DNA from: Pavona decussata
Taxonomy: Eukaryota
Direction: 5' to 3'
Length of the DNA stretch: 64,000 nt
NCBI GenBank assembly: GCA_977016875.1
Contig: CDRNST010000233.1
Coordinates: 930,001-994,000 of the forward strand
The position numbers were made by a program, and so were the translations under genes. The notes beneath the pieces are model-generated. The model searched no databases and was not told where the DNA came from. It was given only the letters and a program-made list of their open reading frames with translations. Shown piece by piece: positions 15,148 through 42,896 of this stretch. Every line of letters starts with the position of its first letter. Position 1 is the stretch's first letter.

Positions 15148-15856
15148 GCTTAATGCAACTGGATCCTGGCCAGTTATCCCGCACTTTATCCCCCCCTAAT
15201 TTCGACATTCATCGGTTTGTGATGATGGGTGTTTGTTTAACACGAGAAAGTGGGCGTTACTGTTATCATTTTACCGCCTTTTTATCGTTCAGTAGACTTT
15301 TCTTCCCCCAAAAAATTAAAGAAGACTGTTGTTAACAAAGTTGTAATAATGCAAAGGACCATACCACGCACAAATAAACTGCTCTGAGTACGTTTCGTTC
15401 AGTGCCGAATCTCTTGTAGTAGAAATGCACGTGCCAGACATCACTTTACGTGTAAATAAACCAAACTGATTGCAGGGCTGACACTACGGCAAAAGGCATT
15501 TTTATCTGGGCCAATATTTCAACCAGTACCACCAGTCTTTTTCAGGGCCAGAGTTACAATGACAGAAAATAACGGGCTCTTAAAAATTTAAATAATTTCG
15601 AACGTAAACATAGCGTTTACAACGATTTTTGACAGCACAGCTGTATATACATGCAGGTGGAAAAGTTTGTTGTGGTTGTCGTCGTCGTCGTCGTCGTTGT
15701 TGTTGCCGTTGTTGTGTCTGCCGCTGCTGCTCCAGCGGTCCTCCAGCGGTTGATAATTTTTTGAGTGGGGACTGGAACAGAAAAAGGAAAGCGGTGAGAG
15801 CACTGGGAACAAAATTTAATTTTGCAGGATTTTGTTGTTCAATTGTTTCATCTATC

Positions 15857-18055
15857 ATGAAGTTTTATGTTCATTTTTGCGGTCCTCAGGAGTTTACCAT
15901 GGTTTTTAAATGGAGTGGCAATGAAAAAGGAAACCTGAAGCAAGTAGTGCAGAAATTTCTGGAGGCTTTTAATGCCAAACATTTGCCTTTGACGAAGCTA
16001 TCCCTCCACAACACCGCTCTCCTGGACAAGAGGAAAACCACTCTGTCACTTGAGAAAGAAGTCAATGCAGTCGTAAAAGATGGTACAGATCTTTTCGTTG
16101 TTGTCAAAACGTTTCCTCACCAGGATGAAAGACAAAAAAATCTTTTGGATTCACCAATGCAGTCCTCTGTTTCTTCACCGCTTCGCCCACTGTCTAAAAA
16201 AGAATCGAAGGCGGGCAAATTCGCCTGTGCCAATTCTCCAACCGCTTCTTCCGAAAAAGAACTCAAGGGCAGTGGATTGGATTCCGCCACTCGTTTTACT
16301 CTTCCACATCTCAAGAAGGTGGGAAGCCTTAGAGAGGCGGCCTGTGTTTGTGCTCAAACCTTACAGGTTGTGGAGAACAACTACTCTGCACTTTCTTGCT
16401 TAGCTGAAATTTACCTGGAAGCAGGACGTCCCAAACTTGCTCTGGAATACATCGAGGCTGCAGTAAAAGTGAACCCCAGTGACCCAAGTTTAAGCTTTAT
16501 CCTTGGCAATTGTCTAGCTGGCGCTGGAAGACTTGAGGAGGCAACAAATGCCTACATAAAATACATGGGTCATTTGGAGGCAACCGGAGCTTCTAAAAGA
16601 CAGATTCACGATGTCCAAGCAGCCATTGCCAAGATTTTTGCTAAAGAAGGAAAAGTCCAAATGGCAAGACAGCTGTTTGCTGATGTGCTTAAAGAAGACG
16701 ACTCCCATGTGGAAAGTTTAAGAGGGTTTGCAATTCACACTGCAGAGAATTCTCAGGAGGATTTACGTGAAGCTATAGCTGTCTTGATGTCTGCGTTGGT
16801 ACATAGCAAAGGCAATCGTGACATTAGAAAACCAGTGGCTGAACTGCTTAGCCGACCAGGTGGGATGTCTGTGTTTGAAAATCAGCTAAGCGACGCTTGG
16901 GAATCATCAGAATCAATGATGTACACTGCTGATATTCTTCGTGAATCAGGAGCCATGAAGCAATCATTAGAGTTAGTGATCCGTGCAGGCCAGCTTTCAC
17001 CATGTGATCCTAGCATCTGCCTGTACCTTGTTCACACTTATGAAATTCTTTATGAGCACAACAAGGCTTTCCTAGCGACACGTGCCTTTATGAACAAGAA
17101 CCTTGCTCTTAAAATTGGAAACATTTCATTCTCACAGATTGTGCCATTCCTGCAGCAGGTCACAGAAGATATTTATTTGTCAATGAGTAATGCACCAGTG
17201 ACAGTTTTTCCAATTTTCAACCATCAGGATGATGTCGGCAAAGCGTTGGACTCTGAGTTTCAGCAGCTTGGACTGTTGTTTACTCTAGTGAAGATCTTGT
17301 TTGTGAAAGGAGCATTGAATTTAGTGGAACCCTTGCTTCCTATTCTTGATAAACTGCATGAAGGTCGTGGTCTGCATCTCACAATTCTGCGAAATGAAGC
17401 TGCATTTTATTCATGCATTAGTCATGTGATGAAGGTCCCTTTTTCACCTTTACCTCAGGATCCAGAGTTCATTTACTTTGCATCAGACAGTCACTGTATT
17501 TCTGCATCATGGAGGTTGATTAATTACAGAGGGAAGCCATGTATCATTCATCCATTACTGGCTACAGGTGTGAAGATCTGGCACATTAGAAAGGAAGGGT
17601 ACTTTTACCCTAAATTTTCCCTCCTGAATGCACTGAAGGCGATTCCAGACAGCTCTGTTGTCATCTTTAACATTGGAGAAATTGATTGCCGAGAAGGTCT
17701 GTTTCAAGCTATAAACAGCTGCAAGTATGACACAATGGAAGAGGCAATTGAGACAGCTGTAGCTATCTACATAAGATTCCTTGAGGAGCAAAAGGAGCAG
17801 CATGATTTTGTGACTTTTGTCCACCCTGTATTTCCAATTTTGGATGAAACAAGGGGAGTAGTGCTGCAGTTCAACGAGAAACTTGAAAAGTGTGTAAGGA
17901 ATTCTGTTGGACTTCACTGGCTGGATCTCCTGGATGAGCTGCTGGTAAATGAGCATTCTGAGTTAAACAGTGAGTACAAACTAGATGGCACTCATGTTCA
18001 TCCAAAGTATGTATCTCTTTTGGAAAAAGCCTTAACAGAAGCTGTGGTGAAGTAG
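15857..18055 (+). CDS. Intronless TPR-repeat protein with C-terminal SGNH/GDSL-hydrolase-like domain and possible N-terminal ubiquitin-like domain (~732 aa)
   Basis: Long open frame. The likely start is the ATG at 15857 (MKFYVHF), just after a TTTTGCAG acceptor-like site. TPR-like helices (ALSCLAEIYLEAGRPKLALEYIEAAVKVNPSD; LGNCLAGAGRLEEATNAY). SGNH-like blocks FASDSH (17477-17494), GEIDC (17675) and DGTH (17984). Confidence 0.85.
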   Translation: MKFYVHFCGPQEFTMVFKWSGNEKGNLKQVVQKFLEAFNAKHLPLTKLSLHNTALLDKRKTTLSLEKEVNAVVKDGTDLFVVVKTFPHQDERQKNLLDSPMQSSVSSPLRPLSKKESKAGKFACANSPTASSEKELKGSGLDSATRFTLPHLKKVGSLREAACVCAQTLQVVENNYSALSCLAEIYLEAGRPKLALEYIEAAVKVNPSDPSLSFILGNCLAGAGRLEEATNAYIKYMGHLEATGASKRQIHDVQAAIAKIFAKEGKVQMARQLFADVLKEDDSHVESLRGFAIHTAENSQEDLREAIAVLMSALVHSKGNRDIRKPVAELLSRPGGMSVFENQLSDAWESSESMMYTADILRESGAMKQSLELVIRAGQLSPCDPSICLYLVHTYEILYEHNKAFLATRAFMNKNLALKIGNISFSQIVPFLQQVTEDIYLSMSNAPVTVFPIFNHQDDVGKALDSEFQQLGLLFTLVKILFVKGALNLVEPLLPILDKLHEGRGLHLTILRNEAAFYSCISHVMKVPFSPLPQDPEFIYFASDSHCISASWRLINYRGKPCIIHPLLATGVKIWHIRKEGYFYPKFSLLNALKAIPDSSVVIFNIGEIDCREGLFQAINSCKYDTMEEAIETAVAIYIRFLEEQKEQHDFVTFVHPVFPILDETRGVVLQFNEKLEKCVRNSVGLHWLDLLDELLVNEHSELNSEYKLDGTHVHPKYVSLLEKALTEAVVK

Positions 18056-21653: not shown

Positions 21654-24600
21654 CCAGCCAACGCTATTCTATAACCTTGAACGAAACCGCACAACTTGTT
21701 TCGCGAAGTTGCTATGGCTACCATCTAAGATACGTGACTACCCGGGTGCCGGCAACCGAAGGCATGCTGGGTAAATCATGTGTGTACATCACAGCCAATT
21801 CCCCGGCTGCTATTGTCGTTAAAATCGTTCGTTTCAAGAAAATCGAAAGAGGGTAAAATCCCATGTTTATCTAATGGACATAATTATAGTGATTGATTGA
21901 GTTAATCTTGACCCTTTGTTCTGATGCGATGCAGGCGTGGGAACCGTCAGCCGTGCGGAAACATTTCACGCTAAATTTTGAGCAACGTTTTTTATTGAAC
22001 GTTATAGGAGCATTAAGCTAAGAACGTCGTTAATTGCAATTGAGCTTATTTGTCGTGTTTATTTTGTAGGAAATAGTTTACATTGCTAATACGTAATAGA
22101 CATCTACTTAAGTTAGTTCAAAAACTCGGAGTGAAAATTGGCGCTCTTTTGCGGTCATTAACAACGCTCCAAGACTTCAAAGGTATTCTGTAACTTGCTC
22201 TGGAAAAAATATCATGTAGAGAGCAAGGTTGATACAGATCGTAAAAGCTTAAACGTGGAAAATTGTCAGCGTTGTTTGGTTTGGGATGACCTGACTTGTT
22301 TGTGTTATCTATCTAGTGAGTGCTTTCAAACACCCCTGACAACTCCACAACGGTACACGGTGAAATGGGTTAGTTAGCGCAATAAAGCAAATCAATATTC
22401 TTTTGTTGCGAATACAATGGCGTAATGTTTCAGGAAGCTTTTGGAGTTGAAGGCAAACATAAATAAACCGAGGTGGCGTGAGAATTTTCATAAGTCAGTG
22501 CATAGCGATGAAAGGTGAAAATATACACGTACCTAGGATTAGCGCAAAAAAGCGCATGCAAAGCGAAACCAGGCCAAAACTTCTGCTCTAATCTAAACAT
22601 ATTTGCTTTAAGGGTAAGTACGAGGAGTTTATTTGATAGTGTAATCTGTAATCTTAAAAGATTTGACATGATTTCCATCTCAACGCCTGTAACTTGAATA
22701 TCCGATCTTCATTAGTCAGCAACTAAAGTGCGTGTACAGTCAGTGGAGTGAGGTAACCAGAGAAATTCAACAAAAGCTTATTCAGCAGGAATATGAAACT
22801 GTCGTATTTGTTTCAATTTGGCAAATTTCCACGGGAAAAAACTGTTTCAAATGGCAAATTGTAATTTGAAAAGTAGAGGCCTGAGGCGATGCGACGAATC
22901 CAGACCATGCTAAACTGCAAACCTAAAGATGACAAATTTAGGGCGCGATCGGCAGAGACACTTTGAAAACATTGGTGTAGCAGAGAGCCTGGTCTGTTGG
23001 GCCTAGGCTAGGCTGGTTCATGATACCGTTAACTGAACTCAGTAGTAAAACAGAGGTGAACAGTGTTATGACTGGAAGAGTTCGAGTGCACTGGGATACA
23101 GCGCAATCAAATCAAACGATCTATGATTATAACGAGAGCACCTCAATGACCACGTGCAGTTTTAGTAAATATAAAGTTATAGTTCTCGGGTAACCTGGAC
23201 TACGACAAACGGCGAAAATAGCTTTTTCCTTCCTTTTTTTCTGCAATTTGTGCCTCAGTGGACCTCTTTTTAACTGTAAAGTTTGCTGATACACTTACAT
23301 TATGAGTGCAACGTGCGTAAATTGAAGGACTGCGGTTTAGTGTTTAGACAATTGCAAGATCGTTAGGCAACACATCAACAGTTTCTTTAAAAAAAAGAAA
23401 GTCCAGATGGAAAAAATATTTCAATTTTGTTCTCACGTTCATGTTGCATTCTGAGTCCATTAGATTCGATCGTTTTGGGGGGGGGCTAAAGTATATGCCT
23501 TGAGGCACGCTAAAACTGATTACATAATATAAGGACAGCCGAGTCTAGACGTTGACTGCCGGGATCATGATGGTGCATATTTTGTAGCATCCAGAAATGC
23601 TCTCATTTGCTCTATAGATTTATATATGTCAAAGATCTGTCAGAGCGGTCTATATTTACTTCGCCAAATAGGCTTATACATATTGCGAATTTTATGGCAA
23701 TGTTATGATCATACAAGTAATGTGGGTCCCCGAGGTCTGTTTGTTTTGTTTCCACGAGACACAAGCATACGCGCGAGTACAAAAGTGTGTGTAAACACCG
23801 CCCACGAAATGCACGATCAAAGATCATCAAAATGTTCTCATATCTGCAGTGACGATGCCTAGGTTGTACTGGTTCTTATGCACGCGAGATTGCCTTACCA
23901 GTAAAAACCAGACACAAAGGCCTTGAGCCTGAAGCCTGGTTTTCCCTAGCTAACCCTGCAGCCAAGAGCGAGCATAAAGTGAGTGAAAAAGCAGTACTAG
24001 TCCTCAGGCAAAAATAACAAGCGGTTTTTATGGTTTTGTAATTGTCTTAACAGTTTCTGGCCGACCTAACCGCCGTGGCACTACAACACGACCTTTGCGG
24101 ACACTAGACTGACACATAAAGCTTTCGCGGGCCGATGAATTGAAGCAGTAACTTAAGAAGAGAAAAAAAAAGGCCACCAATTATTTGTCTGAGTTCAAAA
24201 AGGTCGGAATATCGTTTGTCCTAATCCAGCTAGCATTGCCTTGGTACCTTACCAGTAACCTTATATTTTGAAGCCCAAGGAAAATGCGGAAATCCTGGGA
24301 TTATTTTAAACGGATATTTGAACAAAAATGAGCGCGTACAAAGGAGATTTCAGCAAACTCCATCCGTTTCCGAAAGTTGTTGTGAATTCTGCCAGTCCGA
24401 TCCGACCTCTAGCTCAGTATTGGCGGTGACAGTGAAAAACTTGGTTTTTAACAATCGATCAAATATTTGCTTGTAATTTTTATGTATTTGTGTTTGCGTT
24501 CGTTTTAACTCGATTAACAGAACTCTGAGAGGCTTAAATCAGTGTTTGCGACCGTGTTTGACAACAAAATATTGTTTTGCGTGTTGCAGAAAACGTTTAT

Positions 24601-26743
24601 TGAGGTTGTGCAGATACGTTGCAGCGGGTAACATGTTTTCTGCAACTTGCAACACCGACAATGTTGCAAAACAACGTCAGCATTGCGTCAGTTGCAAGTT
24701 GCCTATTTCAACGGCGCTGTCTTAAACAAACAAGTCTCCACAGAGCCATACAAATCAACTATTTAAAACGCCAGTTCATAAAATGTTCGATGTTGTGTGA
24801 ACTGCCATCAAGTGACTTACGACACTGAGTTAAATTTTTAAAAGGACTGTATTATAGCACATCACTCCTAGTGGGTAATCATACAGAATTACTCATGATG
24901 ATGTAATTGTCAAGCCCGATAGTCAAGTAGTCAAATGATCCAGTGATTTGATTCTTGATCTTGTTGTTTCCTTAGAAAAGAAACATTTACCTCCCCATAG
25001 TCGGTGTATGATAGTGTACTTATCAGCAAGCCCTTACTAAAACCTGACCAACGCAACAGGGCTGTGCTGCCCTTAGTGGCCTCTATATATTCCCATCCAG
25101 ATGGGGAACAGCAATGCCCCTAGTTGTTTCATGCTGTAATAATAGGGTTAAGATCCAGGCCAAAGGAAAAAAACCAAAAGGGTCTTCAAAATTCCGTTTG
25201 TAATAGTTGTAATCACTGTGAAAATTGCAACTCAAAGTTTATATAAAAAAGAAAGACTAAGTTTTCTGGTCTTTCTCAGTGCAAAATAACATCCGCATGA
25301 TCCAGCGACAATTCTTGGTTGTTTGGCCGCTCTTGGAAGAACGAAATCATGTTTGCGCTTTCTAAATTTCCTAGAGTTTAGAGGTCGTCAAAGTTCATAT
25401 AACAGGCCCGCACGATTGCCAACTAAAGATCCTGACATCTTCAATTGTGGTTAATTTGCCAGTATATCCAAATGTGTAGGTTCGAAGAAGAACATGATTC
25501 ATCAATTTACTCCATGATCTTATTAGCATTTCGTTAGCACTGCGCCATACCCGAATACCAAGCTGAAAGATGAAAATACTGACGCTATAAAATAGTAAAT
25601 GGAGATCCTTCTGACGGTAGCCAGAAAACGCTTACATACTCTCAAAATGTGAAGTCTGGGACCAGCCTTATCAACAAAGTATTTACTGAGGGGAAGTAGT
25701 ACGGGGACTTTTGGTTGTGAAAATGGTGCGACAAACACCTTGAACTGATTTAGTTACAAAATAATTCAAGAACATCAAGAAAACAAGAACAACTCATGAC
25801 CTGCTCTAGTGCCTCTTGGAAACGACAACGCAAGAACTTGGAAACATTTAGCTATAGTCTAACTTTTTTTCAAGTTGCAGTCCATTCTTACCCGGTCCAT
25901 CAATAGTCTTGGCACTCTGGGGTGAAAATCTAAGACTTGAGAAATACTTTTAGGTTTCTGTTGATAAAAACCGTTTTTTACTCCAAACAACAGACACCAA
26001 ATTTCCTTGACGGAAGTTTGGAGTTTTGACAGACGTTTGGAGCATATAGTTTCTGCTTTCCGTAGAGCTTTTGCTCCTATATTTCTAACGGATATACTTT
26101 GTTTCTCTCAGGTAAGCATTTCACCATGATTTCACTCGTCAGCGCAATGGAAGATTTTACAATCAATAAAATGATTAGCGCGGACTAATGGTAATGGCAG
26201 AGAAAAAATCCTCAGATGTTAAACGCAAACTGAGTAGACACGTATCACGTGAGTAAAAATACAGTTGTATCTGTTCTTGTAGCACTGTTCTAGTATATGT
26301 AACAAACATAATGCCATGAAATGGCCACCCTTGTGATCAGATTAGTTGGTCTCTCACAGGAGGTTTTAAATACACTATTTGCGGACTACGAATCGATAAG
26401 AGCTAAGTAGCTTAAACGGAATTAATGCATCACTAAAAAAGGAAGATGGTCATGGTTAAGAAAGAAGGCGTGGTTGTCCTTTTGGCAAAATCATTGGCTC
26501 GAGCAAGCTCTCTGTTTAGCTGTTATGTTTGTCACATGAAAATATTGTAGTTTAACGGGAGTACCCAACGACCCTTTTAGAGAAAATTTATCGTACAATG
26601 CACTAAACACCAGCTGAGTGTCCCCAAGGCAATCTTGCATGGTTAATATTTAACGTTCCTGGGAAAAAATACCCGCTCTTCACTGCCAAAGAGCAAGAAT
26701 ATTAAAAAATCCCAGGTTTAATGGCCTATCTCTCACGAATCTG

Positions 26744-29501: not shown

Positions 29502-30569
29502 ATTGCTTAAAGTTTACAATGCCCCCTACCCATCTCCCACCTATACCGGACATTCGCGTGAGTAACTTTACTTTCCGAACGCTGTTTCAAAGCAAAAGCA
29601 GAGGCGTAGGCGTTTTGTATTGAATACCATCTTCAGCAGTCCCTTCCTCTATAGCAAAGCTGAGCGAGTAGAGAACTTATTAGAGATTTCTTGCTCTCTG
29701 GCCGATGCTTCCTCCCCTCCCGTTAGGAAGGCCTGATACTCAGGTTAGCAGCGAGCGGGTCACTATTGTCCAATCAACCGGCTCAAAAATTTCAATTCGA
29801 CAGGAAGTGACGGCCATGGATGACGGGCTATTATTTCTAAATTTAAAATTCGTTGAAGCGAAGAAAAGTGACAGCGAAAGTACTTGTTAATAAACATGAA
29901 TAGCTTTTAAGTCGAACGGGGTCTTGATTACTTCTGATTATATACTGGCCGTTAGATTTGTATCAGTCAAATTTCTCTAGATAGATGAACAAAGAGTCGG
30001 CAACTCTTTACTTTTTTTTTTTTTTAGAGATTGGAGCCTTTTTATCTGACTAATAAAAAGGCTGAGCTTCCTTCATTAATTTTCTTTTAAACTGAAGGGG
30101 CGGAAAAGGGTCAATATATTCACTGTCACAAAATGTATTGGACCTGTTAAAAAATAGTTAACGATTTTCTTCATTTGTTTGGCTTTTGTTTCGCGGTTTA
30201 AGCGAATATTGAATAAAACAAAAGTCTGATAAATAAAGCTGAGCAAACTGAAGCCCGAGGAAACGGTAGAAAATAATTTTAATGAATTTATTTAGCCTTC
30301 GAAAATTTGGGATAAAGCCGGGTATAAATATGGAATCGTAGCAACGGTTGTAGGTTGAGCAAAGCTTTTCTACCATTGGTCAGTTCTGCGACTGCATACT
30401 ATAAATCTAGTGTGATTTTTCAAATGAGGCTTTGGTAGAACGTCAGAAAATCTTCGAGAAACGTAACTTTAAAGCAAATAGTAATCAATATATCGACATT
30501 TTACATTAAAAGTTTGTTCAAACTCTTCAACAGCTCTTTCAACACAAACGAACTATTTCTTTGTGTTCC

Positions 30570-31377
30570 CGTGAGAAACTTCGCCTCAGAAACAGCTGAG
30601 CCAAAGCAAAGATTCCCATCTATTAGCAGGCTCCATTGTAGCTCGACCAATCGGGTGAAATCTTCGTCTCTCGAGCTTACAAAAGGCCCACATGTTAGTA
30701 CAAGATGATGAATATGGACATTCCCTCTGGGCCGAGTTGATTCGGCGGCCGGTCGCGTGCGCCCTTTGTTCGATAGCTTCTATTTGTAAATAACTTCCAT
30801 ATATGGTGTGGGTTAATTTTCTCACGAGCCTTGAATTGCCACAAAAGTTCCCACGCTCATCGGCTAACCATCAACTGACTTCCACTTCACATTGTTGTCG
30901 ATGTATTGTTCGCGATTGCATTTCGTCCGCAGCTAGCGGGTTTCCTTCGTTTATAGACACAAACACGGAGTTTTGCCGGGAAACTGTCTACCTTCGCGCT
31001 CAATTTAGAGGCATTTTATTTACCGTCGAATTCTGGATGCTTGCGAAACGGAGTGGATGAAAAACTAAGGTGAAGTGCAGACGACTACGTGAATAAAACA
31101 CGTTGCCAGAGGAAGTTAAGTCAATGGAGTACTAGCTTTGCGGCCAACACTTTTGCGAAAAACCACTTTTCCGTCGAAGAAGTCGAATCACTACTGCCAG
31201 ACGTTCATGATATCGCTTACCTAGTTGACGGAGCGGTTGTAGTTGAAATATTATGCCCCCTACAGTCTTCTGGATGCGAGATTTCCCTATGGTTTATCTG
31301 TTTTAGAACCACTTTCTCCAAAACGTAGTTTATTCGCTCAGGGCACAGACAAATCTGCGGACGCGAAGCTGTGGGAA
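30570..31377. promoter_or_regulatory. Putative RBPJ proximal promoter with four consensus CSL sites (YGTGRGAA)
   Basis: CGTGAGAA 30570-30577 (+), TTCTCACG 30819-30826 (-), TTCCCACG 30848-30855 (-) and TGTGGGAA 31370-31377 (+, immediately before the ATG). Also a CCAAT near 30647 and locally CpG-rich sequence. Confidence 0.6.
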
Positions 31378-31378
31378 T

Positions 31379-42896
<11,518 letters not shown>

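Follow-up and report, generated by a model that had tools for sequence, protein, structure and literature searches.

Conserved CSL binding sites upstream of the single CSL gene of a stony coral point to putative autoregulation

Results

A single CSL gene behind a 13-kb intergenic region

The window analysed here, a 64-kb stretch of the Pavona decussata genome, carries a gene for the DNA-binding protein CSL (Su(H)/RBPJ) and, upstream of it on the same strand, a TPR-repeat gene (Table 1). The CSL exons were examined singly and by reference, not as a joined spliced model. Exon by exon, they match the Pfam domains LAG1-DNAbind, BTD and TIG_SUH in that order, with E-values down to 2.7e-13, and the top PDB matches of the exon pieces are RBPJ, Su(H) and LAG-1. 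Across the 602-Mb genome, BTD matches fall in this gene alone, which indicates that the genome has a single CSL gene. Between exon 1 and the first exons with Pfam matches lies a block at 33616-33824 that is 74-81% identical in all relatives and has one open frame, rich in Pro/Ser and in acidic residues; it is probably CSL exon 2.

The 5' leader contains a short upstream open reading frame (uORF). Its start codon lies at -122 to -127 in all ten species compared, the encoded peptide begins MPPT(V/A/S), and its length is usually 17 codons, with 14 or 7 in some species. The conservation of this uORF suggests translational control of CSL dosage. It also implies that transcription begins upstream of 31253. 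A start near 30890 is our guess, suggested by where conservation ends on the 3' side, by an Inr-like TCACATT and by the Hes promoters described below, in which the last CSL site stands shortly 5' of a TATA box. A start upstream of sites S2 and S3 would place both of these in the 5' leader.

Table 1. Positions in the window of the genes, exons, CSL sites and conserved block discussed in the text
Feature	Position	Strand	Details
TPR-repeat gene	15629-18055	+	intronless 808-codon ORF, faint Pfam TPR matches, syntenic in L013
D1, distal CSL site	21936-21943	+	CGTGGGAA; orthologous L013:4065, L012:1644, L022:1185
D2, distal CSL site	22477-22484	+	CGTGAGAA; orthologous L013:4627, L012:2206, L022:1715
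Conserved non-coding block	30530-30950	.	~400 bp, 430-850 bp before CSL ATG
S1, proximal CSL site	30570-30577	+	CGTGAGAA, exact consensus match
Weak RTGGGAA site	30613-30619	-	TTCCCAT on +, ATGGGAA on -
S2, proximal CSL site	30819-30826	-	CGTGAGAA; + strand TTCTCACG
S3, proximal CSL site	30848-30855	-	CGTGGGAA; + strand TTCCCACG
Upstream ORF, 5' leader	31253-31306	+	17 codons, conserved uATG
Fourth site	31370-31377	+	TGTGGGAA, 9 nt 5' of ATG
CSL coding exon 1	31379-31646	+	ATG 31379, 268 nt, GTGAGT donor at 31647
Remaining CSL coding exons	33616-42896	+	Pfam, PDB matches, conserved exon blocks in relatives
Pfam LAG1-DNAbind	35730-36035	+	exon-piece match
Pfam BTD	39005-39172, 39686-39868, 40362-40583	+	exon-piece matches
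Pfam TIG_SUH	42069-42194, 42606-42896	+	exon-piece matches

A cluster of CSL sites far beyond chance

Four exact matches to YGTGRGAA (S1, S2, S3 and the fourth site at 31370) precede the start codon of this single-copy gene, as established by a reading of positions 30300-31900 and a scan of the whole window. A preliminary description of this DNA had listed the same four sites and had placed three of them in the class CGTGRGAA; both statements hold, with S1-S3 matching that class exactly. The distal sites D1 and D2, discussed below, belong to it too. A run of Ns interrupts the window near 29.3-29.5 kb.

The rarity of the cluster was gauged from whole-genome counts, Poisson arithmetic, a count of close pairs and Markov simulations. 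The window holds 15 YGTGRGAA sites against 8.7 expected from shuffles. Genome-wide, YGTGRGAA occurs 71,803 times in 602 Mb (1 per 8.4 kb; 67,601 for the reversed control) and CGTGRGAA 25,973 times (1 per 23 kb; 25,734 for the control), and counts so near those of the reversed controls indicate that the motif is without general enrichment. For a fixed stretch of 810 bp, the Poisson probability is 3.4e-6 for at least four YGTGRGAA and 6.9e-6 for at least three CGTGRGAA. S1-S3 span 286 bp, and in a 602-Mb genome one expects to find three CGTGRGAA so close together (within 290 bp) about twice. In Markov-1 simulations of 64-kb sequences, four YGTGRGAA fell within 800 bp in 1 of 1000 runs, and three CGTGRGAA within 280 bp in 0 of 1000. 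S2 and S3 form one of 74 directly oriented pairs genome-wide with a gap of 6-36 nt; most of these pairs are satellite or transposon copies, and by a reading of the list ~18 look unique. By these measures, a group of four such sites within the 0.8 kb that precede the CSL gene is far beyond chance.

Many CSL targets, though not all, have a head-to-head pair of sites with a spacer of 15-17 bp (SPS). The proximal block contains no SPS pair at up to two mismatches, and the sole candidate in the window adjoins D1, with a 19-nt spacer and two mismatches. A scan of the CSL and Hes promoters gave no convincing pair either, in agreement with the earlier remark that the sites are not arranged in this way.

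The proximal sites S1-S3 recur in every orthologous locus

With exon 1 as the sole query, database searches returned 14 short proteins that are 69-84% identical; one more, at 55%, came from a profile search. The contigs encoding them, from ENA, Logan and JGI, provided the orthologous loci L001-L013, L022 and L023, and a DNA pattern derived from the proximal block retrieved five further metagenome contigs (L024-L028). Exon 1 has the same start and the same donor in all orthologous loci, and L013 shares the upstream TPR-repeat gene, which shows that the loci are syntenic.

The taxa compared are well separated. Identity between the window and its relatives at four-fold degenerate sites of the CSL exons is 44-63%, or ~0.6-1.0 substitutions per site, so that synonymous sites are near saturation. 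More than ~1 kb upstream of the gene, the DNA of the window and its relatives is mostly unalignable.

S1-S3 recur in every fetched locus (at least 11 taxa) at the same position, on the same strand and with the same spacing, at offsets of ~-800, -550 and -520 from the ATG. S1 has one mismatch (CGTGTGAA) in two lineages, L010 and the clade of L024/L025/L027/L028. In S2, 8/8 columns are invariant in 10 species, and the site is present in the five metagenome contigs as well; it lies within the longest invariant run of the block, the 15-nt GTTAATTTTCTCACG. S3 is likewise invariant in 8/8 columns and present in every locus, and its invariant run is exactly the 8-mer, with variable flanks. Fully invariant windows of eight columns number 22 of 367 in the block (10 species), with S2 and S3 among them. 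The most distant species is L012, whose exon 1 is 55% identical; its 20 kb contain only five YGTGRGAA sites, each of them orthologous to one of S1-S3, D1 and D2.

The two other sites named in the preliminary description, which had asked for an alignment of orthologous upstream regions, have a different history. The site at 31370 is exact in the window only; L001 has GGTGGGAA there, and the others have TTGGAAA or GTGGAAA. The weak site at 30613 is invariant in 4/7 columns, most species reading ATGAGAA or ATGAAAA. Both are probably lineage-specific chance matches, to judge from the alignment; of the sites listed there, S1-S3 are conserved and 31370 and 30613 are not.

The proximal block behaves as cis-regulatory DNA

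S1-S3 lie in a non-coding block that is 79-86% identical to its counterparts in relatives, with 54% of columns invariant among 10 species. The block is single copy in the genome, which rules out an origin as a repeat or transposon. A coding exon was likewise rejected: there is no 3-nt periodicity (51/60/53 variable columns by phase) and no conserved open reading frame, and 1-nt indels occur. A conserved RNA fold fared no better, with an alifold covariation term of +0.98 and compensatory pairs at 4/94, and a search of positions 30000-31700 found no Rfam family, only a sub-threshold match to a bacterial sRNA (E = 0.47). Single copy and devoid of Rfam, codon or fold signal, the block behaves as cis-regulatory DNA.

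Conservation in the block is not specific to the 8-mers, since their flanks are strongly conserved too; only S3 and D1 are exact islands of conservation. Further invariant runs in the block, as long as the CSL sites or longer, are CCATATATGG, TATTTGTAAATA and GGTCGCGTGC. The first of these (30797-30806, 12 nt before S2) we take to be a perfect CArG box (SRF/MADS). The second (30781-30792) is presumably forkhead-like, and the third (30751-30760) contains what we regard as a class-C Hes-type CGCGTG, through which Hes proteins could feed back on CSL. We also read two ATTGT motifs at 30889-30910 as Sox-like. A CCAAT box at 30647 and a CAGCTG are invariant as well.

A conserved distal module

The preliminary description had called the YGTGRGAA sites elsewhere in the window scattered. 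This does not apply to the two at 21936 and 22477, which form a conserved distal module (D1 and D2) ~9 kb upstream of the CSL gene, retained in four lineages. Their spacing is 541 bp in the window, 562 bp in both L013 and L012, and 530 bp in L022. D1 is an invariant 8-bp island amid poorly aligned sequence, whereas D2 closes, on the 3' side, a conserved sub-block of ~110 bp (22376-22494). In L023, which represents the L002/L023 lineage, a search of 10 kb did not reveal the distal module, and a third distal site in the window, at 23430 (-), has no positional counterpart in relatives.

In the 13.3 kb between the TPR-repeat gene and CSL, 0.57 CGTGRGAA sites are expected and six occur (P = 3e-5). 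The distal module lies 3.9 kb past the 3' end of the TPR-repeat gene at 18055, and could serve that gene instead of CSL. A further conserved non-coding block, at 26080-26310, ~5.2 kb before the CSL ATG, aligns to L001, L004, L006/L022, L007 and L013 at 62-87% identity and contains no exact CSL site.

Hes promoters of the same genome carry the same sites

Hes genes are textbook CSL targets, canonically Notch-dependent, and served as a positive control. The genome has eight Hairy_orange loci, all of which were fetched. A bHLH exon can be recognised in six of these Hes genes, and each of the six has 2-4 CGTGRGAA sites within ~1.1 kb upstream. Taken together, the seven promoters (six Hes and CSL) hold 23 CGTGRGAA in 8.4 kb, where ~0.4 are expected from permuted words that keep the CpG. 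In gene orientation, six of the seven (CSL and five of the six Hes) start with one distal + site and continue with two or three - sites closer to the gene. The Hes promoters are partly paralogous, so this common order does not amount to six independent observations and is suggestive only.

The CSL promoter thus resembles the Hes promoters of this genome in having clustered CGTGRGAA within ~1 kb and no classical SPS pair. It differs in two respects. Eight Hes sites follow a CCAAT box at a fixed spacer of 12 nt, as CCAAT-N12-TTCYCACG (L014, L016, L017, L018, L021), and in L016, L017 and L018 a TATA box follows the most proximal CSL site after 8-15 nt. Both features are missing from the CSL promoter.

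Two side observations concern these sites. S3 and the proximal site of HesB (L014) share the 13-nt string TTCCCACGCTCAT (window 30848-30860), which may reflect an extended site preference or a coincidence. Genome-wide there are 158 occurrences of the composite CCAAT-N12-TTCYCACG, compared with 19 of its reversed control. Most of the 158 fall in a family of dispersed repeats (L029-L036) whose members are 76-92% identical across 0.6-1.6 kb and have the composite close to one end, indicating that a mobile element carries a CSL composite like that of the Hes promoters.

Discussion

So, does the coral CSL gene respond to its own product? We consider it rather probable that the gene is controlled by CSL through the proximal block and the distal enhancer, in a Notch-dependent feedback. 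The block at 30530-30950 would be the proximal promoter or enhancer of the single CSL gene, and the module ~9 kb upstream a distal enhancer within the same 13-kb intergenic region, with S1-S3 and D1-D2 as five high-affinity CSL sites kept intact by selection. CSL protein is predicted to bind S1-S3, and probably the distal module too, which would make the gene a Notch/CSL target like Hes and its transcription dependent on CSL. Together with the Notch intracellular domain and Mastermind, CSL would raise its own expression in signal-receiving cells, a positive feedback like that of the fly socket cell and of worm lag-1; when there is no signal, bound CSL could keep expression low. The CArG, forkhead-like, CCAAT, CAGCTG, CGCGTG and CATTGT motifs would act as local-activator inputs. 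What we infer from the sequence is that CSL occupies the sites, that the loop depends on Notch and has a given sign, and that the distal module belongs to CSL.

The preliminary description had proposed that the gene is a direct target of its own product. The conservation of S1-S3, D1 and D2 and the presence of clusters of the same 8-mers at Hes genes lend this strong, though indirect, support, and the sites at 31370 and 30613, being lineage-specific, drop out of the case. A direct CSL input to the gene is well supported by sequence.

The Notch dependence of that input is a separate matter. CSL might bind the sites independently of Notch and act as a constitutive activator or repressor of its own level, for example in a dosage-buffering negative autoregulation. 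In both the fly socket cell and the ADF neurons of the worm, CSL has functions that do not require Notch (PMC3390367, PMC8289040); SPS dimer sites are absent here, and the conserved uORF points to tight dosage control. We nevertheless hold this unlikely, given that Hes genes, which are canonical Notch-dependent targets, share both the site class and the site order, and that the pathway up-regulates its own components in Nematostella (PMC13370024).

A reading without any CSL input would have the block kept by other factors (SRF/MADS, forkhead, NF-Y, bHLH, Sox), its CGTGRGAA words being bound by another protein or conserved merely as pieces of composite sites. Against it stand three exact high-affinity words in 290 bp, an arrangement expected about twice per 602 Mb, two more conserved words in the distal module, one of which, D1, is an 8-bp island on its own, the coincidence of the S3 invariant run with the exact 8-mer, and the dense packing of Hes promoters with the same words. 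The conservation of the whole block, in which CCATATATGG, TATTTGTAAATA and GGTCGCGTGC form invariant runs of equal or greater length, speaks in its favour, and on balance we think it quite improbable.

It is very improbable that the block is conserved as a transcript, be it a structured 5' leader, an alternative exon or a non-coding RNA, with the motif matches incidental. The leader does reach at least 31253, and the CCAAT box at 30647 fits a start inside the block, but the lack of an Rfam match, covariation, codon periodicity and a conserved open reading frame, and the 1-nt indels, argue otherwise. A functionless chance cluster, for which one may cite the lineage-specific site among the four and a test made post hoc (the sites were sought once the gene had been recognised), is effectively refuted by a rarity of 3e-6 to 7e-6 per fixed stretch, combined with the invariance of sites between taxa that are almost saturated at synonymous positions.

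The preferred reading, autoregulation by CSL, has counterparts elsewhere. To our knowledge, the only cases of CSL autoregulation so far are a fly enhancer and worm lag-1, the latter being reportedly, in work by Luo, Underwood and Greenwald in 2020, a direct positive target of its own product in LIN-12/Notch cell-fate decisions. The fly enhancer ASE5 has five high-affinity Su(H) sites in 0.4 kb just downstream of Su(H), and it maintains autoregulation while needing other inputs (PMC3390367). It has in common with the coral element a compact layout next to the gene for CSL and several unpaired high-affinity sites; local-activator motifs between its sites are required for it to maintain Su(H) transcription (PMC3390367). 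The two differ in position, the fly enhancer lying just downstream of the gene and the coral sites upstream, three of them proximal and two ~9 kb off, and in partner motifs, which are Vvl/POU and box A in the fly and CArG, forkhead-like, CCAAT and E-box in the coral. They share no known sequence homology, and the function of the coral element is predicted from its sequence. For C. elegans, PMC8289040 cites the positive autoregulation of lag-1, and the likeness is that of a CSL gene serving as its own direct positive target, which for the coral is a proposal. The site consensus differs: worm studies use RTGGGAA and YGTGGGAA (PMC8289040), whereas the conserved coral sites are all CGTGRGAA. The coral element is thus predicted to be a further case of a kind of CSL autoregulation already known from fly and worm.

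The preliminary description had gone further and suggested that the loop could predate bilaterians. This does not follow from the comparison. Because the fly element is downstream of Su(H) and nothing so far ties it to the coral element by descent, an independent origin of the coral and bilaterian loops is at least as likely. It is possible, though doubtful, that the two-module circuit is fixed across stony corals and perhaps anthozoans, and that self-activation of CSL by Notch was present in the cnidarian-bilaterian ancestor. If so, canonical CSL-dependent transcription would be under strong selection in cnidarians, and Notch-driven CSL self-activation would be ancestral rather than separately invented in flies and worms.

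It is disputed whether Notch signalling in cnidarians runs through the canonical, CSL-dependent branch (PMC4335385 versus bioRxiv 10.1101/2021.02.09.430419 and PMC13370024). In Nematostella, Hes genes were unchanged after SuH knockdown, canonical signalling in early neurogenesis was doubted, and a non-canonical Notch route was argued to be ancestral (PMC4335385). In Hydra, the RBPJ motif is over-represented in the promoters of Notch-responsive genes that recover fast, and NICD activates the HyHes promoter (bioRxiv 10.1101/2021.02.09.430419). According to a 2026 study of Nematostella, Notch signalling up-regulates components of its own pathway, SuH and Notch are expressed together, and knocking down SuH gives the same phenotype as the inhibitor (PMC13370024). 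In the literature that we searched, CSL sites had not been described at the CSL gene of any cnidarian.

In this dispute, the invariant CSL sites at the coral CSL gene constitute sequence-level evidence of selection on DNA binding by CSL in cnidarians, to which the Hes promoters with the same exact sites add. The 400-bp block with its three 8-mers is a small and precisely defined element for direct tests, and a cnidarian case would show whether the CSL loop is a recurrent design or an old one.
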